Shown piece after piece: positions 3,331 to 64,000 of a DNA stretch of 64,000 nucleotides. How positions within the stretch are numbered: the first letter of the stretch is position 1; every line of letters starts with the position of its first letter. Source of the stretch: Dimorphilus gyrociliatus (Eukaryota; Animalia; Annelida); NCBI GenBank assembly GCA_904063045.1, contig CAJFCJ010000024.1:558001-622000 (forward strand), written 5' to 3'. The notes under the pieces are model-generated. The model was given only the letters and a program-made list of their open reading frames with translations, searched no databases and was not told the DNA's origin. Made by a program: the position numbers and the translations under genes.

Positions 3331-6300
3331 TTAGAATGAGCAACAATTTTTCTTTTGGTCTTTAACTTCACCAAGTTGCATACCTGCATTTTTTACTTGT
3401 AAATCTTCGTTTGCACATAATATCCTAAAAACAAATCAATACATTTAAGATATTTAAAATCATTTGATTTTGAAGTTTACCTTGATAATTCAGTGACAGC
3501 TTCTAAAACATTTGCGCCTGTTTTTGCACTAGTTTCCATAAATGATGCTTCTATCTCCTAATATTTATGAGAAAGTTTTGTTATCTTTTATCTTTTAATA
3601 GAAAGTATCAAGTTACCTTTGCTAATTTCCTACCATCTTCCGGAGTTACTGATAATTTGTTCATTTGTTTGACATCAGATTTGTTTGAACACAGCATTGT
3701 AGGCATTTTGTGAACTTCTTCAATTATATTTGCCCATTCTCTTACGCTTAGGAAAGAGTTTTCGAATGTACAATCATAGAGAAGTAAAACGCCATCTGCT
3801 CTTCTGAAATATGATTTTGCTACACTTCGGAATCTTTCCTGACCCGCTGTGTCCCATAGTTGTAAAACAACTAACTTATCATCTACTTCAATGACTTTTG
3901 TTTGAAAATCGACCCCTAAAGTCGAACTAAGATTGTTGACAAATTTATTTTTACATAGTCTCATAATGAAGCTGCTTTTTCCCACAGCGGCGTCACCGGC
4001 TAAGATTATTCGATACATTCTTTCCGGTTGAGCAGATGATGAAGATTTTACTAGACGCTTTAGGGAGTTTACTGCCCTTGACGAGGTAGTAACATTTGCG
4101 GGAGGTGTAACACTTTCTACTGCTGTTTCTTTTAGTTCTTCTACTTCCTCAGCTGTCCTTTCTAAAGGCATTTCAACTGGTGCCACTTCCGATTGTATGC
4201 TAACAGCTTCACTTTCTGATTCTATATCAACAACGTCTCGGAGAGTCGAATGACCGCTATCCAGATCATCTGGACCTTCCGCATCGATACTCTCATTACA
4301 TGGACTATTACCACAGTTTTGTTGCATCTGTTGTAGTTGTAGTTGTGCTTGTTGTTGAGGAATAGCAGCATTATTTTCAATTTGTTTAACTACTTTGTCA
4401 GTTACAGCTAAAGGAATGAGAGGCGGAGGAAAATAATCGCTGACGTGGGAACCTTTTCTGGCCGATACGCGGCGCTATAGAAATTCATATAAACTTTTAA
4501 GTTAAAGATAGGAAGTAAAATAACTATACTTACTGCACTTGGGCGGTGTGTCCTATTTCTCTCCAAAGTGCTCCTTAAATCATCATTGACGTCATGTAGC
4601 TTTTTATTGGCGTCACTTTTTATAAATAAATACATAAAGATTAATCGAGATATCTTGTATTTTATGAATTGCTTACTGCAGGAGGTGAATTTGTCTTGTG
4701 AGATTTTCCTGCTCCTTGATGTACTCCATTACTGAGTCCCTTTCACTAAGTTAAAGACTATTTTTAGATTCTTATTTTGACGATTAAAAACTTAATTTAT
4801 ACCTCTCTAATTCATAGCACTTTTCTTCGTATTTTTGCTTTATTTGGGTCATTTCTGACCTCAATAGAGCCAATTTTGTTTGGCAATCAGTGAGATTATT
4901 TTTCAAAAATCTGTTTTCACTTTTTAAATCTTCCATTTGTGATTTGAAATCGCCATTATCCTTCTCCTTTTTCCATTGCTCTTCAATTCTCTGTAAGCGT
5001 TTGACATTTGCTTGTAACTCAGTGATTTCGCTCTCCAGTGTAGTTTTTAATAACTCCTTCTCTTGTTCATGCTTTAAATGCTCATTCGAAATTATCCTAC
5101 TCTCTGCCTTAGAAACTTGATTTTCAATATCATCCTCTAATTGCCGCAGATGTTGTGAATGGGCATCTTTCTCCTGCTTAAAAGATCTTTCCAACCTCTC
5201 ATTTTCGCCACGACTCTGACTGATATCTTTTATAAAAGAAAGAACAATTTCCTCAAACTCTCTCAAAAGTTCTGGAAGTTGCGCTTCATGCAACTTTTGA
5301 TACATATCGCAAACTTGATCTTGACTATATGCCAATAATAAAAAACAATAAACAGTCATTAAACTCTCCACAAAATATTATATATTAAAAAAAATATGTT
5401 AATATAAGAATAAATCTAAAGAATAATCGATATTTGTGTTAAATCATTTATGAAAAGTTACTATTTTCATAATATATTTCAGTTAAACTATTGACTAATA
5501 TGTATATTTTATAAAAATAGAAATGACGTAGAAGAAACCTAGTTTTTGAAAAAATAACATTAGCTCTTTTTTTATTCATATAATATATATATATATACTG
5601 TATATATGTATTTCTGTATATATTCTGATATAGATTTTGGCAAAGAAAACAAATTGTAACGTTTTTTTTTTAATAATCAATAATTACATCCAAGTTGAAA
5701 ACTTTTGCAGATGTTGTTTGAAAATTTTCAGCTGTCGCATTTTTATCGAAAGTATATAAATGATTTACCTCTAAAACGATTTATTGTGACATAATATTGA
5801 TTAAATTCTACCCACTGTTTCGTTAAATTGTACAATATTTATTTAAACTTGGTTACTTTTGCTGATGATCTTTTTTTTTCATCTAGTTTAACAGTTTTCA
5901 TAAATTTGCATAATTTCTTAAATATTTAATAGACGTTTATTTGAGTTAGTATAATATTAAAATTTATATTAATTATTATAGTTCTTTTTTATCAATTAAA
6001 TAAATTCTTAAATGTTTATATTTTGTAAATACGAATGTTAGTGTTGCAATAATAATACGAAAAACTTACCATGTTAGCGTGGAAAAACTTTCATCCAAGT
6101 TCTCCATGAAATCGTCAGTATCCAGATCATTTTTTGAACACTGTGCTGCTGTATTTAATCCCTTTCTTTTTTCAAGGGCTTCATTCAAGTCGAAAAAGCT
6201 CTGCTGAAACTCGGATATGGATATTTTCCCATCTCCATCCTTATCCAATTCTTTGAAAACATCGCTTACTTCATCTCTTGTTAGGTTCTGACAAATACTA

Positions 6301-6383
6301 CTTAATTCCTTTTCGTCAATATAGCCAGAACCATCCAAATCGCAAGCATCGAATATCTGACCAATTCTCGTTGTGGCATCCAT
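3331..6383 (-). CDS. RASEF: RASEF / Rab45: EF-hand + coiled-coil + Rab GTPase, 7 exons, about 671 aa
   Basis: Exons (minus) 6383-6070, 5324-4803, 4745-4677, 4615-4534, 4474-3617, 3557-3481, 3424-3331; all GT-AG and phase-consistent (2016 nt). Two EF hands ([24 protein letters not shown]), long coiled coil, Rab motifs [28 protein letters not shown], and C-terminal prenylation motif CCSF. Confidence 0.95.
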
Positions 6384-7706
6384 GATTTTTCCAAATAGTT
6401 TGAATAGAGAAATATTTAACAAAATATGTAAATTAGGTTCGATCAAACTGCAGATGTTGCCAACGTTTGTACGTCATAACTTGGTCGTAGGCTTAGACTT
6501 TTTCCCAGAGTATATTGTTTACATATTGATTACGACCCGATGTATGGGGGTGCTAAAAGAGAAGGGACGGAAAGGGAAATTGATACAGCAAATGGATGGG
6601 CGGTTGATGTGTTAATGATAGCTTGATACAAATGTATTTATACAAATCATATAAAGTCGTATATTTGGTATAGCCTACTATGTAAAAACATGTGATTATT
6701 TCAAATACTATTTATAAACTAATACCAATATAATAAATGTTTTAAAATTTTACCCACTCCTCCCACCCCTTTTCCTGACAGTTTCCCATAAGTTTTAAAA
6801 TAACTGTTACACTGCTATATACATTTGCATAAATTTTTGTTTGTGCATTCGCAAATATATACTTTTTTACATTAGACCATAAAAAGCTGAAAGCTTCTTT
6901 AACTCTATTAAATTTGTGTTGTTCAGTTAGCCTATAAAATTTGTCATTAAGAATTTATCTTATTATCATTTGAATATTCTTATTTAATCGATATGCATAC
7001 AAAACATTTCAATCGAATATTCCTTATAAATATAAATTTAAGTTTATTATATCTTTTCAAAAGCAATATTTCTACTGCAAATACTTTTTTTTTACTATTT
7101 TTGCAGTGTTAGCAAAACAGTTTTATTTTCTTATTTGAAAAGTTATATACTCGATTTTCTTTGTTCTATTTACTTTTTCCTACTTAGGTTTTTAATTAAT
7201 TAGGTTAATTGGATTAAAGAGAAATTCTTCAGAAATAAAACAAAAGACAAGGCATAAAATAAAAAAAATAGAAATATTCCAGAAATTCCCATAGCTAATA
7301 AGGCGAATATGTATCTGGAGAGAAATTCAATCGTCTAAATTTAGCCCCAATTCGTTTCCATTCACATAACGACCCCTTTCATATTTTATTACTGTTCGAG
7401 GTGATAAATCGAGTAATATCGGTAAACTACAGCGCAGTCCTATAATTATCTATTATATTTTTATGTTCCAAATATTGGAAGTGTAAACAAAAGTATTACG
7501 CTTATATTTTTATAGGTCAGTCTTCGGTTCATGTTTATGAATGAAAAATTTAAACTTTAATAACAAAATTTTATATATTAAATTCATATTTAGGTTACAA
7601 AAAATATAAAAAAACTGTAATTTTAATATGGGGTTTAATGTGTTTATTACTATATTTATATTATGGAGGCGTTTTACTCTTCTTCTTCTTCTTCTCTAAT
7701 GTTTAA

Positions 7707-31200: not shown

Positions 31201-32443
31201 CATTTAGGACAAATAACTCACACAAGGAATATGGATAAGAGTATCTTACGGCTGACAGCTTATTGCTGTACTTAGACACGTTCGATAACAACATAATTCC
31301 TTGGGCAACCATTTTCACTGCATTTTTCTTATGTATGTTTCCAGTGTGGAAATTACGAAAATTTTATTCTACTTATGCTCGACGTTCTACTACGAATAAT
31401 TACTTAAGTAAATATAATTAGTGTAGGTGGCCTTTAAAATGAACCTTTCGCCCTTTAAACAATATATTAGGCATTAAATAGTGATCGAACTTCTTATTTT
31501 CAATTCAATTACTAATAATACCACTACAAGCATAGAAGTAGAATGTAAAGTACTATAATGCAATTGGTATCGAGAATGAGTGCCTGTGATTTCTCAAATC
31601 TTAATCCATACATCAGATAGACTGTATTTGACTGTATTTGTGTGATGCTTGAGGTATTGATATGCAAATAGTTATCGCATATACTGTAGTAGGGAAAATT
31701 CATTGATACAACTTTTACTCTGGTTCTTATATCAAAGTCTACAAATCAGTAGGAATGACATTTCCCACAAACTATATTTATGCATGGGCTAATAGATAAA
31801 TACCTACGTTTTTTTTCTACAGCGTCTCTCTGGGATTCGCTGCTGTCATTGGGAGTGACGGCCGCAGTTTCGATTGCAGTCGGGGCGGTGCTGTTAATCG
31901 TCCTTCTTCTAGCCTGCATTGTTTGTTGCTGCTGCAAATGTTATCGCAAGAAAGGACAGAAGCGTCCCAAGATGCAGCACTATAATTCAACGCTTCCACC
32001 CTGCCCTACTGCAAATCTTCCTGCTAGCAATGCGACTCCTTTGATGCAGCATTGTTACACTCCCGCATCGTCACACCACCATTATTTGCCCGGTAATAAT
32101 TTTTTTCATTCAAAATAATCGCTAATTAAATCACTACCTAATTATGCAAAATTGATTAGAATTACGTAACACGGCAGCAGCGCCTTCCGGCTATTCTCAT
32201 TCTAGTCAGGCGTCCAACTCCTATAGTGGTTATCACGCTCTACCTCCCGTAGCGCCTCCCAGCACCGGTAGTTCGTACTGCCCATATATTCCACCAGGTG
32301 TCACCACTCAACAGAACTCGTCTGTTCACGGGTCTGCGTATATTCAGCACCAGAGGTCTTATACACCAACAAGTTCAAGATCAAGGGCTGATAGTATAAC
32401 AAGTAGTACATGCAGGAATAACATTCAGCCAGTAAACTTATAA
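19265..32443 (+). CDS. CUB + LDLa single-pass receptor with Cys-rich juxtamembrane and Pro/Ser/Tyr-rich tail (MIG-13/LRP12-like architecture); 5' end incomplete
   Basis: Exons 19265-19512, 21437-21525, 25540-25601, 27065-27235, 31823-32092, 32160-32443, all phase-consistent. CUB (DCQVTLEA..RIMLRFEKFDL..C..FDG..CG..STGRFVTLYF..GFKI), LDLa (FQCENGRCI..VCDNTDHCGDLSDE), TM (GVTAAVSIAVGAVLLIVLLLACIV), CCCCKC, tail ending IQPVNL*. Confidence 0.88.
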
Positions 32444-33580
32444 CGTCATTCAAACGTTACAGACGATTTTCGTTCCTCTATTCAAACTATGTGCTCAAAG
32501 TGTAAAAAAGATTTTTTTTAATGTAAATATTTATCTTTTTATTGTTTCAGGGACTAGTGACAGATTTGTCGTGATTTGTAGCCGCATTATTGTGAGTACG
32601 TTTGTTCCGTGCAAACATTTGATGCATTTTTTATTTCGTTTATTATTTTTCTTTGTATCAGTTATCATGTTTTTCTATATAAAAAAAGCAATCTACTTGT
32701 ATGTGTTGAACCAAATATACATTTTAATATACTGTGTTCTGTATATATACATATATAAATATAAAGGTTTCATATTATCACACCTTCACATACGTTTATA
32801 CAGATATATTTATATACAATATGTACAGTATATACTACTAACATATATATAATATATATATATATATATATTAGCAGTATGCCTTTTTTTAATCTTCGAA
32901 CATTTTCAATGTAAATAATTAATATATTCGTTTATTTAAATAAACATCATGAATAAATTAAGGACGGGTAATATTTCCTTCTATAAAATCTTTTATCTCT
33001 TCTTTCTGCCTCAATTTTAAAATACAATATATCTGATAGATGACGCTTTTATAGATATTTTGTACGAGTATTTGTTTTAAACAGTTGTTAAGTATAATGG
33101 GTTATCTATGAAATTATCATAGAATTCATAGATTTAAGGATATTAAATTACCAAGAAATGATATATAATAAAACGCTTTTAAAGTTGTAAAAGTTGCATC
33201 ATTTTCCAATAATTAATGTCTTTTGTGCAGTTCTATTTTTATTTGGATGATAAAGCTAATTTTACGCAGTTGTGGGGTCGAATAATTATGTTTAACAAAA
33301 AAGGGTTATGAATATTTTACTAAAGCTTTTCAATGTATTTTATAATTGGCTTATTTATAAAGATTTCTAATGTATTTACGTCCAGTTACATCCGTATAAT
33401 CTATTACGATATAACGGTAGTGCAATTAACCACAAACGGAAATCACTCAATTAATTTTGCAAATCATGGAAAGAAGAATAGGCTATAAATTCACTTAACA
33501 AACAATCGAAGCATAATAAATGTACGGAAGCTTCGATTTTCAACATAAACGCTTAATTATTCAAAAAACCATCTATGAAC

Positions 33581-33588: not shown

Positions 33589-33694
33589 TTAGCTGCCATT
33601 TTTTTTGCATAGTTAAAGGAGGCGTCGCTAGCGTCGACTTTAATAAAAAGAATTTCTTTCCCCAGTTTTGCCAAAACTTCTCTGTTGGAAGATT

Positions 33695-35337
33695 ATGAGA
33701 CGAAGGTTGACTTTATCATGTTATTTTTATTTGGTCATATTTGGTAAGTAATTGAAAATGATGAATTTGAATGATATTATTTAAATTAGATATAAAATCT
33801 TTAAATAAATGTTTTATTCGTAAAATTTTATATTTTCCAAGTGTCAGTTACTAAACTAAGAACAATAGAATTCATTTTTATTAATAACGGAGAAGATGGT
33901 AAAGATATAATTTCCAGACCAAACTTAAAGTTTGTTTCATCTTCCTGGAAATATAGCTCAACTTAAAAGAACTACTCCTGTAATAAAAACAATACTCTTT
34001 ATGTTTCTTTCTTGAAAACAGAATTAATAGATTATATATAAAAACTTTTGATATTTTTAATTAATTTCCAAGAAGACATTAACAAACATATAGGGTCTCT
34101 CTTTTAGATAAATAGTATCATTTCTTAAATAAAGCGATAGTTAGATAATTCATAAATATATAGATGTACAGTAGTAATAGAAAAATATTAACTATCATTT
34201 AATTATTTCTTCCCTAAACAGTCGGCTGTAATCTTGGTTACTCTTTCCAAGTTGATAAATAGTAAGTTTTAAATTTTTTATTATATAGTTTTATTTTTTC
34301 CTTTATATTCTTACTTACTAACTTTTTTTATCTTATATGGAATCTGTTGAAAATTCTTTCCAACTGTCTTTCAATAAAACAGTTAAAGATGATCTTTACA
34401 ATTGTATATATATATATAGAACATTTTTACACATGCCATTTATATGTATAATGTACCAGTTATTTCCAAGTGATTAATAATAAGAAACTTAATTGAAAGT
34501 TTATTAGGAAACTGAATTAATAGGAATTTCATAAAATACTAGTTTTTCTTCCTTTTTTTATTATTACTCATTAACGTCGGATTATGGCAAATCGTTCGAC
34601 TTGCTAGGTTAAATTAAAGTAATTTTCCTAGTTTATCGATTTCAATTAGGATGATTATTCCAAACCAGATTATACGACATAAAAATTAATTCTAAGCGAA
34701 AGAACAGCATTATATATATATTAAAAAAATATGTATAGGTATGTATTATTTAAAGAAAATGAATAGAATCCATTTTTAATCGGAACAAAAAAATTTCTAC
34801 TTCTATGAACGTCTATTTATATATGTTTACTATTTATTTATGTATTACATGAATAGAACGTAAACAAAATAAATAAATAAATTTTCATAATACAGCTCGG
34901 AAGACTGTCAAAAGAGCCTCTGCACCCGACTTAAAGGAGGAGAACTTCAACGTTGTGTTGATCTCTATTGTAATGGCGTTAACGCGAATAATTGGCCAAT
35001 GAACCCATACCCAAGTTTCGCGTCGATCTGCGTACACCAACTCTGCCCAAATTTGACTGGGTTTTCTTTGTTAAAATGCTCCAAAGAAAAATGCTTAATA
35101 TCATCCATATTTGACCTACCCAACAAATGGGAAATTGAAGTTCCCGAATGCGCGGCTAATTGTCCAAAAGAAGATTCCTATTACGACTGTTTAGTTAACT
35201 CATGCGGAAATGTCGAAAACACAAACGCACAGAAAATTTCTAAAAGATGGAGTCATCGTGTCTGTATGGACTCGTACTGCAAAAATTTGGCAAAAGTCAA
35301 ATATTTTATTTGCGGTCAAACACATTGTAACAAGTAA
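33695..35337 (+). CDS. Secreted cysteine-rich precursor with four 4-Cys repeats, 3 exons, 176 aa (function unknown, prohormone- or toxin-like)
   Basis: Exons 33695-33743 (TTTG|GTAAGT), 34222-34261 (AATA|GTAAGT), 34896-35337; 531 nt, in frame. Signal peptide MRRRLTLSCYFYLVIFVGCNLG. Repeats CQKSLC-x10-CVDLYC, CVHQLC-x10-CSKEKC, CAANC-x8-CLVNSC, and KR-WSHRV-CMDSYC-x10-CGQTHC. A donor at 35334 could add a short extra exon (for example ...NKIF* via the acceptor near 35532). Confidence 0.85.
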
Positions 35338-38300
35338 GTTTTCAGAATAGGATGAAAGGAAAAAATACAGAATTATTACATTAAAGAAAGAAATTTTAAC
35401 CCATTTTTTCCCTTTCAATTACAAACTTAGTTATATTTTTTTTTTGCCTTTTATTTCTTTTCTTTTTGAAAAAAGATTGAGAAAATAAAAAATATGAAAA
35501 TTCAATTTTTATTTTGTTACTTTTTTCCATATAGAATATTTTGAACAGACAAGAAAACTACAATTTTGTATTAAGTATTTTTTATCTTTTTTTTTTGAAC
35601 GATATCATTGGAAATCGTATATAAAACTATCTTTAACAGTATATATGTCTATACCAATTTTGGTATAGAACTTTGGTGCAAAAGATAATTTTCTATATTC
35701 AAAATTAACAAACTTATTTATGAAAGAGCGTTTATATTTAGACGGTTTTTTTTAAAGTTTCAGATAATGGATGTGAGCATCTAATAAAAATTTGGACCCT
35801 AAAAATTATCCCAACTTTTTTTATTTAAGTATTAAACAATAATGACAAAAGAGCAACAAGTTAAATTAGCTAAAACGATATTATATATTTTGAAAGTTAA
35901 AAGGATAAATAAATAATGGGAAAAGGCGTTTTTTCCTCTCTTTTCATAACATAATCTCTTTATGTTCTCTGCTCCTATACTCTTAACTATTCCTTTATCA
36001 TTCTTTGTCTCTCGCTCTATCTTTGTGTATCTTTTCAAAGTCAGTCTAATACTTTTTCCCTTTTATTTATAACTTTATCAAGCCAACGACATAATAGCTA
36101 TAGCTGAATATACAATAATAGAATATAATAAAATGACCAAGTATGTTAAATCCTGTTTTGTTAAATGTCAACAAGAAAAGAAAGAAAATGAAAATCCTTT
36201 TCTCTCTCGCAAAATACTTCTTTTTTATTATCGAAAGAATAAATTTTAATATTTGAAGTAATAAAAGCTAATCAATTAGTAATAGTAAACAATCGAACGG
36301 AAGTATTCTGTTATATTCTTATAATACGGATAAACTGTTTCCTTTTCAATACAATTTCGATGTATTAGCAATTTTTCGGTTTTAAAATAAATTAAGCGTA
36401 AATATTCTATTGGAAAATAACTATACTAAATAAGCAATAATGTTATGAAAAGGAAAAAATGGCCGTAAAAGCGATATTAAGAACAAACAAGGCGAAATAG
36501 AAATCGAATTCTAAACATTTGTATATGTTACATTTTATAGCTTATTAATATTAAAGGAGGAGTGTTTTTGCGTACGATTTAATTAGATACAATTAAGTTG
36601 AATAATTATATCTAGAAAATAATATATCATATATTAAATATGTAGGTTCATTGTGTAATTTTTTCTCATTAGCATAGAGCATGATTTTTATATCGGTTAG
36701 CATAGAAATTTCTAATATTACTAATTGTCAGTAAAAAAAGGCGGGCTATAACACATTTGTGTATTGGAGACACTTATCGTGTTGTAATATGACATATGAC
36801 GTAGAATACCACCTAAATTTTGTAATTTTATAATAGATCTCATAACTGATTAATGAAAACTTGTTCAATAATTTGAGACCAGAAAAATTCTAATTCTTTT
36901 TGAGATTACCTCAGAATAGTGATACGAACTTTATTCTATTGATAAATACCCAACTCAAATTCTTTCTTTGTCAAATAGAAAAAGAAAAACTCATTAAGAA
37001 TCTTCAGAGAGAGGCAATTTTATTTCTTATAGGTTTAAGACTGCCTTAACGCAAGAACACATAATGAAAATACCATTTTATGGTATGCAATAAATTAACA
37101 TCGAACATTTTTTGCTAAGAGAAAGCTCTTTAATTGCAGTTTTATTACAATCTGTACTTCCGTTAACTAGTAGTAATTTTCTAATGTTTGCATTTTAACC
37201 CTGGAAAGCAAACTAGATAGTGATCAATTTACATTTGTACTGCATATTTCTTATCTACACAAACTTTAATGTATGAATGTATTCGTATCACCTACGCGAA
37301 AGGCTAATTTGTCAAACGCTCTGTAAAATAAGCAAAGGGTTAATTTTCAAGATCAATGAGAGGAATAAAAGTAAAAGTTAGAAACTTTTATCAAGTCAGA
37401 ACACAACACTTGAGTCAATCATTTATCATAGATATATTTCATTTTCTTATCTATGAAGCCGAAGTTTTAATAATTTCTAAAAGATAATGAAGAATAAAGG
37501 GAATATGAAAATATTTCAAAGAATGAAAACTGTAAAATTAATTGCTGAAAAGGGAAAATAGAAAAGAAATGTTAAAAATAAGATTGATATGAGAATTGAA
37601 AAAAAGACATCTCTAGAAGAATTATTCATGATATTTACGATTAATAATAATAGACATTGATATGCAAGCAAGCATTCTCTTTTTTACTATTAGGCAAAAG
37701 AGTAGAAAGTATGAATGTAGAAATAATTTTAATAGGCACGCTATATTTTGCTTATTCGTTTAAATTGAAGATGATATTTCCAGTTAAATTTAACATTCTT
37801 TAAAGAATGAATAAGGAAAAAATTCAATTTTTCATTTTCTTTGTAAGGTAATTATATAATCAATGTGTACTGCTTTTAAAAAATAATACGACAAGGTAAT
37901 TTACTTGGTATTTAACACAAAGTTAATTTAATTTTTCATATATGTCTTTTTATCTATTTTTATTTGAATAGCAAACATACGTATTATCAAATCATCTTCT
38001 TCAATACGAAGTAACTTTAAGTCTTGTTAGTCAACAAAGTGGAAGTAGAAATGGAAATTATGAACATAATTAGCTGCAGTCGCCATCTATCAATTTCTTC
38101 CCTTAATGACGTATTTTTATTGTTCAGTTCTTTTAGTCAATAACTAAGGATAATGTAATTAATTAACAACATTTAATGAATAGAATATGAGTATATAATT
38201 ATATATTCTGATAGTCTTAATTATGATAAACTTTTGTGTAATGTCTACTAGTAGTAGTATCTACTGAGTTAAGAAAATATATATAATTTATTATATATAC

Positions 38301-38647: not shown

Positions 38648-39784
38648 TTACACACAAACACTTATCAATCTATTAGTCGAAGTTAAAGAAACTTCACAAA
38701 TCTTTACATCCTTCATAATTGGTTCCAATCTTATTTTGTTATAATTACTACCAACGCATGAGAACGAGCAGTAATATTCATTTCCCTCAATAGAGTAACA
38801 TGGTTCAAATTCATCATAAAAATTAGCAGTTACTTTAACAACGTTATCACACGTTTTGTTTAGAAGAGATAAATATATATTAACATTGATTATTGTTATA
38901 GCTTCAAATAAGATTTCTGATGTAAAGATAACATTACTATTATAAATCATATCTGTTTGACATTTAGTTTCGCCGTCTCCTAAACTTTTTAAAAGTGATT
39001 TATAGCTGTTTGTGGATATAAAATCATGCCATTCCAATTCAATATTGAAAGTTGCTGTTCAAAAGAATTAAAAGTTTGTTATAAATCGCATTTAATCACT
39101 ATGTCTTTTACTGTTACAACCTAAGCATTGTGGCCTAGAATAATGAACAGCTGGTATAATTTCAAAGTAACTAGCTGAAGGCCCATCTGCTGACAATGTA
39201 TGGCAGCTTCGTTCTTCCAAATTCACGTTAACACCAAGACAGTAATCTGTTCTATTACAAATATTTACACATTCTTCTTCAGACTGTATGTCTTTAATAT
39301 TATCAATCAAACAAATGCAGCCAATGACAACTTTTTGGAATCGCTTCCAATTAGAGCATTCTGTAATAATACTTTTAATATATATTTAAAATTCATATAG
39401 AGATTCTTAATACCAGAATGGATAATTTTTGAATAGTAATAAATATCAGCAGCAAAGGACATTCCATTGTCATAAAAAGCATATTTTAAAAGTCCACATT
39501 TTTTGCTTGTACTATTCCAAGTAAAAGAGGCGCATCTCACATGATCTTCACATAATTTCAGACATTCTTCCATAGTTTTACCAAGGTAGAGTTCAAAGTG
39601 TGATAATCCAGGCAATTCGTGTTTATAGCCTTGGTAAAGCTTACAAACTATTTATGATGAAATCGTTAACGTAATCCGATGAATGAGGATTTAAGATTTA
39701 CTTACTATTTTTATCCATAAACAGTTTAAACGGGATACTAATTTGTAAGGCAGTAAATATAAAAAGTGTTAAAACGTTGTTCAT
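38648..39784 (-). CDS. Secreted PAN/apple-PAN/apple-beta-sandwich protein, paralogue A, 4 exons, 319 aa
   Basis: Exons 39784-39706, 39647-39414, 39360-39121, 39054-38648 (960 nt; all phase-1 introns of 53-66 nt). Signal peptide, two PAN cores (EECLKLCEDHVRCASFTWN..KC; EECVNICNRTDYCLGVNVN..SC), and a C-terminal domain with DGETKC...CSFSC...ICEVS. Confidence 0.87.
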
Positions 39785-40093
39785 AGTTCAATTCCGTTAC
39801 TTCTTTTTGATGCATTTAAACAAGGATTATTCTAAATTCGATATTTGAATAATAAAACATAGAGACGACAACTTGATTAATATTTTCTTAAAAGAATTCA
39901 TAAATACTCTATAAATGTTCATATTCAATAATTAAGTGTTTTTTTAATGTTATGACTGAAAAACTGCTAAAATAAAGTAATAGAACATGACATTTACTAC
40001 TACCTCTGTTTATACATTTTTATTTATTAGCCAGTCAATGATTAAAGGTTTGCAGATATTTTAATTTTTTATGTATATAACAACAAACTCTCT

Positions 40094-41245
40094 CTAGTAA
40101 CAAACATTAAAAGAGTGCGTTGAACTGTCTACAGATATCTCACAAAACGTTATACTTTTAACTAAGGGTTTAACTAAAAATTTAGAGAGGTTAGAAACAG
40201 AACAAGAAAATTTGCAAATATTAGAAACTTGCTCTAACAATTGACAACTTTTATAGATTTCATTATTATATGTTCCAACGTCAACAATACTTGTACACGG
40301 TCCTGTTAATGCATTTAAAAACACTTGCACATCAAACTTTACTGGTTTTCTAAAGTATTGAGTAGTGGTGAAAATAACAGTTGGTTGATCAATCGATCCC
40401 AACGAACAAGTTTTCATGCCGTCTCCATAATTTTGTATAAGAGGAAATGGTTTTTCATTTACTGACATTGAATTCCATTGAAGCTCCACTTGAAATGTAG
40501 CTGTTATTAATAAAAAAGACTTCAGTAATGAATTGTTTAGTAAAAGGTTACCATATATTAAATACCTAAGCATAAAGGTTTAATATGAGTTTCAAAGTTT
40601 TTATATGATACGATGGAGGCACCATTACCTATTCCACAAAGAAGATGACAACTCTTTTGCTTGGAATAGTTTACACTAAAGCAGTTCTCCTTTTCTTCGC
40701 ATTTCAATAAACAATTTTCCCTTGTTTCGTTAAAAGATTTCTCTAAAAGACATCTATTATCGAAGACATGATTCTTAAATGTCCTAAAATGGTTACAACC
40801 TATAGCAAAGTGTGTATTTTAATATTACAACTATTTAATTATCAACCAAAACAAACCTTCTTCATAGACTTTAACATAATAGATTGTTCCTGCTTTATTT
40901 CTTAGTTCTGGACCAAGGATAGCTAAATTTTTTGTTACACATTTATTTTGATTAGCTGTAAATTGAAATGAGAAACAACTGTCAGATGCTGTGCATCTAT
41001 TCAAGCATGACTGTAATTTAGATTCGTCAAACGTCTCGTCTGTTTTTTCAAAATTATAAATAGTGTCAGAGTATGCTAAGTAGCTTCTACAATCTAAAGA
41101 CATGTTTAGAAAAAATAGTTAATTATTCTTAATACATTAATTTGAATAACTTACATTCTCTTTTAACAAACATACGAGTTTGTTGAAAATAATAAGGAAT
41201 TATTAAGCTAATAAAGATAATATTAAAACAAATTGTTCTCTTCAT
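40094..41245 (-). CDS. Secreted PAN/apple-PAN/apple-beta-sandwich protein, paralogue B, 4 exons, 322 aa
   Basis: Exons 41245-41155, 41093-40857, 40799-40566, 40500-40094 (969 nt; phase-1 introns). PAN cores QSCLNRCTASDSCFSFQF..KC and ENCLLKCEEKENCFSVNY..SC. The last exon is 407 nt, as in paralogue A, with DGMKTC...CKFSC...FCEIS. Confidence 0.87.

Positions 41246-62180: not shown

Positions 62181-64000
<1,820 letters not shown>

Follow-up and report, generated by a model that had tools for sequence, protein, structure and literature searches.

A transcribed gene of Dimorphilus gyrociliatus encoding a candidate prohormone-like precursor with a conserved C-terminal four-cysteine peptide

The window analysed here is a 64,000-nucleotide stretch of the genome of the annelid Dimorphilus gyrociliatus (assembly GCA_904063045.1, contig CAJFCJ010000024.1, positions 558,001 to 622,000 of the forward strand), and coordinates are those of the window unless another contig is named. 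At 33666-35337 on the forward strand, in an AT-rich region (approximately 26-30% G+C), lies a gene for a small cysteine-rich protein, hereafter the peptide gene, which is genuine, transcribed and spliced. An earlier note, made from the sequence alone, had proposed that three exons are joined here to encode a secreted precursor of four-cysteine modules, the last of which would be released at a Lys-Arg (KR) site. We compared RNA contigs from four public runs over 33600-35450 with this model. The contig of X7, a 2017 run of one organism, matches the window exactly; that of X1, a 2025 marine metatranscriptome, is approximately 97% identical to it; and X2 is an invertebrate-metagenome RNA-seq run. 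Both proposed junctions (33743/34222 and 34261/34896) were recovered in spliced contigs of three runs from three independent studies, each with GT..AG borders, and the three-exon model therefore holds. The contigs do not rank the transcript forms, and contig depth was not used to rank expression. The parts of the transcript are as follows.

32493-32522, forward strand: last 30 nt (the verified part) of an upstream exon spliced to exon 1 in the X7 contig; its GT donor lies at 32523
33666-33743, forward strand: exon 1; acceptor AG at 33664-33665, 5′ untranslated region (UTR) at 33666-33694, ATG at 33695, donor GTAAGT
33744-34221, forward strand: intron 1, GT..AG, 478 nt; spliced out in contigs of three runs
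34222-34261, forward strand: exon 2, 40 nt; acceptor AG at 34220-34221, donor GT at 34262-34263
34262-34895, forward strand: intron 2, GT..AG, 634 nt; spliced out in contigs of three runs
34896-35337, forward strand: coding part of exon 3; 146 codons plus the stop TAA at 35335-35337, with all four 4-Cys modules
35334-35757, forward strand: optional intron 3, 424 nt; GTAAGT donor over the last codon and stop, acceptor AG at 35756-35757
35758-35822, forward strand: optional exon 4; 65 nt seen, carrying AATAAA

The first two coding exons supply the N-terminus of the protein. Exon 1, which holds no ATG ahead of 33695, encodes MRRRLTLSCYFYLVIF (16 residues) and ends one base into a split codon (phase 1), corresponding to the n- and h-regions of a putative signal peptide, and exon 2 encodes GCNLGYSFQVDK (12 residues), in which the end of this putative signal peptide and a probable cleavage region (..VGCNLG/YSFQVDK) can be read. 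By rule of thumb, this N-terminus reads as a classical signal peptide with a basic n-region, a hydrophobic core and a small-residue c-region: MRRR is followed by a run of 15 hydrophobic residues and then by NLG, which fits the n/h/c rule by eye.

The transcript exceeds the proposed model at both ends: X7 shows an additional non-coding exon on the 5′ side, the end of which is at 32522, and an optional one on the 3′ side that begins at 35758. At the 5′ end, the X7 contig shows exon 1 starting at the 33666 acceptor and joined to the upstream exon; an in-frame TAA stands just ahead of the 32522/33666 junction, so that 33695 stays the first ATG. The same contig continues for 633 nt on the upstream side, into the last coding exon of a neighbouring gene on the same strand (31780-32522), whose product is a membrane protein of the single-pass type bearing a juxtamembrane CCCCKC motif and whose stop lies near 32441. 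This join could have arisen by read-through transcription, from a 5′ leader that is shared or overlapping, or by a merge during assembly; the genome paper of D. gyrociliatus is said to report neither operons nor trans-splicing. At the 3′ end, the C-terminus of the protein depends on intron 3, giving ...HCNNFR* when the intron is spliced (X7) and ...HCNK* when it is read through (X1), and the 3′ UTR of the unspliced form reaches at least 35405. Because the stop codon overlaps the GTAAGT donor and the intron is optional, public RNA contigs contain both ..CNK and ..CNNFR as C-termini, along with two different 3′ UTRs.

Exon 3 of the X1 contig differs from the window by seven synonymous and six amino-acid changes, none of which alters a cysteine or the KR and all of which fall in linkers or loops. 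This corresponds to approximately 0.09 changes per synonymous site versus 0.02 per non-synonymous site, which points to purifying selection on the protein.

The coding part of exon 3 carries 16 cysteines, which together with the signal-peptide-like N-terminus fits the proposal of a secreted, cysteine-rich protein. Their successive spacings (4,10,4 / 19 / 4,10,4 / 18 / 3,8,4 / 19 / 4,10,4) resolve into four modules, three at 4-10-4 and one at 3-8-4, just as had been claimed; among 200,000 residue shuffles of the exon none contained three or more modules, against the four observed. A single KR occurs at residues 116-117 of exon 3, followed by a 29-residue peptide (WSHRV...HCNK) with a net charge of +4, and the residues that match KR-W in the other linkers are NN-W and NK-W. 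The elements of this layout are the following.

34906-34971, forward strand: module 1, CQKSLC-x10-CVDLYC; Cys framework kept in all homologues; predicted helix-loop-helix
35029-35094, forward strand: module 2, CVHQLC-x10-CSKEKC, with an NLT sequon inside; Cys framework kept in all homologues
35149-35205, forward strand: module 3, CAANC-x8-CLVNSC, with a CX3C first half; in most homologues, lost in the L006/L025 type
35242-35247, forward strand: Lys-Arg dibasic site, invariant in eight of eight aligned members; putative prohormone-convertase site
35248-35334, forward strand: terminal peptide WSHRVCMDSYCKNLAKVKYFICGQTHCNK, 29 residues, with module 4 at 35263-35328; the most conserved part of the family

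The protein belongs to a family with members in metagenomes. An exhaustive HMMER search covering 1.84 billion representative proteins returned six matches, five of them genuine (P0001, P0002, P0004, P0005 and P0006), and alignment-based searches added the homologues P0012 and L013. The remaining HMMER match, a 2503-residue bacterial protein (P0003), was rejected as spurious. The homologues are unnamed open reading frames (ORFs) on eukaryote-like metagenome contigs of 38-46% G+C, each ORF corresponding to exon 3, and when these ORFs were extended upstream in frame, modules 1 and 2 were found in each of them as well. The relationship is reciprocal, since exon 3 of the window is recovered at 62 bits by a profile made only from the external homologues.

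Conservation within this family is concentrated at the C-terminus. The residues invariant across the family are K116, R117, W118, S119, R121, C123, M124, S126, C128, K129, K133, V134, Y136, F137, C139, G140 and C144, giving the C-terminal pattern KRWS.R.CM.S.CK..KV.YF.CG...C, and the CX4C spacing of the terminal peptide is present in every homologue. The KR is invariant in all eight aligned members although the neighbouring residues differ. Two homologues (the L006 and L025 types) carry none of the module 3 cysteines and have an acidic spacer in their place. We measured the conservation of each segment as mean pairwise identity over the eight members.

KR and terminal peptide: 0.80
Module 1: 0.34
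Module 3: 0.25
Module 2: 0.23
Linkers: 0.07-0.16

An identity of 0.80 in the KR and terminal peptide, against 0.07-0.34 elsewhere, is what one would expect of a bioactive peptide constrained by its receptor within a fast-evolving precursor. The suggestion of a KR-released C-terminal peptide is thereby strengthened, as the KR is invariant and no other part of the protein is nearly as conserved as the peptide behind it. The further suggestion that the precursor yields several copies of one peptide fared poorly: modules 1-3 stand without flanking dibasic sites, show only 23-34% identity, and in the case of module 3 are missing from two homologues. Given the lack of flanking sites, the weak conservation and the dispensability of one of them, modules 1-3 look more like a pro-region or associated peptide made of the same module.

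We also searched the species' own genome (77.9 Mb in 349 contigs) for related genes. A protein search with exon 3 gave nothing beyond the peptide gene itself, and a degenerate DNA pattern for the module, combined with six-frame reading and profile searches, located three further dispersed genes on other contigs.

G000:C5:1275346-1275735 (approximately 1.2755 Mb), forward strand: relative L003, ...FRQKRR followed by LNDATAQCMQSYC-x11-CIHRWCHRQK
G000:C1:284969-285298 (approximately 285 kb), reverse strand: relative L002, ...WKGRKR followed by SWNDVTQSCVVEAC-x12-CSMMKCGK
G000:C20:289574-290062 (approximately 289.6 kb), reverse strand: relative L018, ...NMRRKR followed by YRLGLYDCIVSYC-x10-CIIQKCNRETLL

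Each of these genes ends in a multibasic site (KRR, RKR and RRKR in the C5, C1 and C20 genes, respectively) followed by a CX4C-X10-12-CX4C peptide, and the net charges of these terminal peptides range from +2 to +6. The external-only profile matches the C20 gene at 23.7 bits and the C5 gene at 11.4 bits and does not recover the C1 gene, and these weak scores mark them as distant relatives of the same style rather than as orthologues. The signal-peptide exon of the C1 gene, MKRIITFFSLLILFLVVRKGFTLA, ends in phase 1 like that of the peptide gene, and a signal-peptide exon of the C20 gene was read by eye; automatic two-exon modelling of the three genes yielded nothing. In the C1 gene the KR is followed by Q, and the gene also carries a G-RKR motif and a C-terminal GK; in neuropeptide processing such features usually signal that pyroglutamate is formed and the C-terminus amidated. 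A near-identical orthologue of the C1 gene, P0013, is present in other public assemblies. As a separate observation, the matches to the module DNA pattern also included a tandem array at G000:C3:2180440-2183043 (reverse strand), with a 141-bp period and at least 19 near-identical copies, each a cysteine-rich unit (CETGDCCQSGKCECTSCPANKC); it has the look of a highly repetitive, Cys-rich secreted protein.

Structure prediction lends moderate support to the idea that the modules form helical hairpins. AlphaFold2 (AF2) gave a useless model when run without an alignment (predicted local distance difference test score, pLDDT, 38.9), and with a 10-sequence alignment it reached a mean pLDDT of 70.8, with approximately 85 in module 4. 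In the latter model each module is predicted as a helix-loop-helix (H2-8/H15-25, H39-49/H55-66, H84-88/H95-103 and H120-127/H133-144), and the second cysteine of each first pair is predicted to lie at or just beyond the end of the short first helix, a position that in the model would reconcile the i/i+5 spacing with a hairpin. The helix-loop-helix part of the proposal has the moderate support that a shallow alignment affords, and a match to a solved hairpin did not emerge: Foldseek against the PDB and a wide VIA-align search, both with the full model, returned no significant match (best Z 3.0), and the ESM Atlas gave no usable match by features and none by structure. A mismatch of the whole model is expected and carries little weight, as it consists of four small hairpins on flexible linkers.

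Sequence databases and the literature likewise offered no name for the family, in agreement with the earlier note. Pfam gave nothing meaningful on exon 3 or on any family member. Exon 3 as the query drew nothing from a word-index search of 5.8 billion proteins, and the same search with alignments as queries returned only family members that were already known together with P0012 and P0013. Against PDB sequences the profile had no match and the terminal peptide drew only chance rows of cardiotoxins (E>=1). In the literature, where matching was by exact string, nine protein fragments were absent from four supplementary files of PMC7854359, including the D. gyrociliatus neuropeptide fasta, and fragments of the conserved motif were absent from the supplements of the spiralian neuropeptide surveys PMC6425005, PMC8557429 and PMC3890597 and from PMC and bioRxiv full text, the coverage of which is incomplete. 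Since exact-string searching was used, absence from the literature is weak evidence, and the family, for which we found no name, may have been described earlier under another one.

Our preferred explanation for these observations, which we hold with somewhat better than even confidence, is that the gene encodes a secreted precursor of the neuropeptide or peptide-hormone kind from which a single conserved helical-hairpin peptide is released at the C-terminus. Our data show directly that the gene model is correct, that the gene is transcribed and spliced, and that the cysteine framework, the family and its conservation profile exist. A putative signal peptide, a pro-region that evolves fast, a dibasic site without variation, a C-terminal peptide of approximately 30 residues that evolves very slowly and is probably disulfide-bonded, and paralogues with furin-type sites and amidation signals together amount to the organisation of a peptide-hormone or neuropeptide precursor. 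Two features by which neuropeptide precursors are recognised are both present, namely a conserved dibasic site (eight of eight members) and an active peptide far more conserved than the rest. We infer the steps of secretion, cleavage, disulfide pairing, folding and signalling as follows. The precursor would begin with a signal peptide and two helix-loop-helix modules of the twin-CX4C kind, continue with a variable spacer and a dispensable third module, and end with the invariant KR and a conserved twin-CX4C peptide of 29-30 residues. Within the secretory pathway, a subtilisin-like proprotein convertase would cut behind the KR, the terminal Lys may be removed by a carboxypeptidase, and the released peptide, its hairpin held by two disulfides, would serve as an extracellular signalling ligand (a neuropeptide or hormone) acting on a receptor. 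The N-terminal modules would be a pro-region or a co-released associated peptide.

More specifically, but with confidence a little short of even, we propose that the terminal twin-CX4C peptide, with the consensus WSTRxCMESHCKxAxNKVQYFxCGKxHCH[KR], is an unrecognised disulfide-rich hormone or neuropeptide of marine invertebrates that acts on an orphan receptor and has been kept across lineages distant enough for the precursor to be otherwise unalignable, Dimorphilus having one orthologue and three divergent paralogues. Studies of how peptidergic signalling evolved, and the pairing of orphan receptors with ligands, draw on curated catalogues of neuropeptides from annelids, molluscs and other spiralians, and the peptide would add a ligand family to this spiralian picture; the CX4C helical hairpin would in addition be a new disulfide framework for peptide structural biology. 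As the nervous system of D. gyrociliatus is miniature and well mapped, localisation and receptor pairing would lend themselves to direct study.

Several considerations weigh against a signalling precursor, and this interpretation should be read with them in mind. A dibasic site occurs in only one of the three linkers, so that the pro-region would make up most of the protein, an unusual arrangement, and the charge of +4 on the peptide would also fit an antimicrobial peptide. The signal peptide and its cleavage were assessed by rule of thumb, the structure model was built on 10 sequences, and the homologues all sit on metagenome contigs. The signalling role is proposed from sequence, transcript contigs and structure prediction, and absence from the published D. 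gyrociliatus neuropeptide set could reflect either an oversight or a function other than that of a neuropeptide.

Among known systems, the nearest analogues in precursor logic are the prohormones of somatostatin and allatostatin-C, urotensin II, MCH and CART, in which a single conserved cysteine-containing peptide stands at the extreme C-terminus after a dibasic site; they share with the peptide gene a signal peptide, a poorly conserved pro-region, a KR or RR site and a conserved disulfide-bonded C-terminal peptide, but there is no sequence similarity to them, the peptide here has two CX4C pairs, and its pro-region is made of the same cysteine module. In architecture, the nearest analogues are the plant alpha-hairpinins (vicilin-derived MiAMP2-type and wheat Tk-AMP-X-type), defence precursors with the pattern CX3C-Xn-CX3C whose modules are all released as similar peptides. 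Like the protein described here, they carry tandem 4-Cys helix-loop-helix modules on one secreted precursor; unlike them, it mostly has CX4C in place of CX3C, and a conserved cleavage site separates only the last of its modules from the rest. The twin CX3C and twin CX9C (CHCH) proteins, single hairpins of the mitochondrial intermembrane space that have no signal peptide, resemble the predicted module in having a hairpin with two parallel disulfide staples formed from two equally spaced cysteine pairs, but they differ from it in the CX4C spacing, in the signal-peptide-like N-terminus on exons of its own and in the absence of a Pfam CHCH match.

The class to which the earlier note had likened the modules, the cystine-stabilised alpha/alpha (CSalpha/alpha) peptides, comprises scorpion kappa-hefutoxin/kappa-KTx and vil14a of Conus framework XIV, in which a CX3C-Xn-CX3C pattern with C1-C4 and C2-C3 disulfides staples two antiparallel helices. 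The likeness lies in the two cysteine pairs, a loop of approximately ten residues, a helical hairpin (predicted here), a length of approximately 25-35 residues and release (putative here) from a precursor. The differences are that seven of the eight half-motifs here are CX4C and only one is CX3C, that there is no sequence or structure match, that the peptide is conserved rather than hypervariable, and that it stands behind three further like modules and outside any venom context. With the CX3C framework failing and no match in sequence or structure, the gene should not be filed in this class, and membership in it is not sustained. Nothing points to the toxin role that had been considered, and we regard it as highly improbable that the peptide is a toxin-like modulator of ion channels directed at prey or predators in the manner of kappa-hefutoxin or vil14a. 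The predicted helical hairpin and the 4-Cys layout are all that speak for such a function, but the defining CX3C spacing does not hold, no toxin matches in sequence or fold (the cardiotoxin rows, at E=1, are chance), and the peptide is under strong purifying selection, whereas toxins typically diversify. D. gyrociliatus is a ciliary grazer without a known venom apparatus.

Two further alternatives deserve more weight, beginning with host defence, which we consider rather unlikely. Under this scenario a cationic two-disulfide peptide released at the KR would kill microbes by acting on their membranes, and an anionic or neutral pro-region would mask it until secretion. The charge of +4 on the peptide and of +2 to +6 on those of the paralogues would suit such a function, as would the amphipathic-looking helical hairpin of the AF2 model and, for what so weak a measure is worth, the high contig depth in the whole-animal run; plants moreover provide a precedent in multi-module 4-Cys hairpin precursors that yield antimicrobial peptides. 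Mature antimicrobial peptides usually outpace their own pro-regions, however, and here the peptide is 80% conserved and the pro-region 7-34%; one paralogue, the C1 gene, also carries signals of the pyroglutamate and amidation type that are typical of neuropeptides. One may instead postulate an uncleaved multi-domain secreted protein (a matrix, mucus, cocoon, adhesive or binding protein) in which four disulfide-stapled hairpins form the functional unit and the KR is incidental. Four like modules in tandem with linkers of 18-19 residues, the retention of the module 1 and 2 cysteine frameworks in all homologues, and the NN-W and NK-W at equivalent linker positions, from which it follows that the KR could be repeat-derived, speak for this alternative. 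We nevertheless judge an uncleaved structural protein unlikely because the KR is invariant in eight members despite differing neighbouring residues; the paralogues, moreover, have extended furin-type sites (RKR, RRKR and KRR) at the same place, module 3 is dispensable, and the extreme gap in conservation between the last module and the others is unexpected for equivalent structural repeats.

The window holds other features apart from the peptide gene. Downstream of it on the opposite strand (38648-41103, reverse), several ORFs with PAN/Apple-like cysteine patterns (e.g., CLKLCEDHVRCASFTWNSTSKKCGLL) are probably the exons of one secreted multi-PAN protein. Further upstream (3608-6446, reverse strand), ORFs for an EF-hand, a coiled-coil segment and a GTPase domain of the Rab type follow one another in series and look like exons of a large EF-hand-Rab protein, which by eye we would name as the CRACR2A/Rab44 type. 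Near the end of the window, a full-length U1 snRNA gene lies at 63586-63750 on the forward strand (Rfam RF00003, 133.7 bits).

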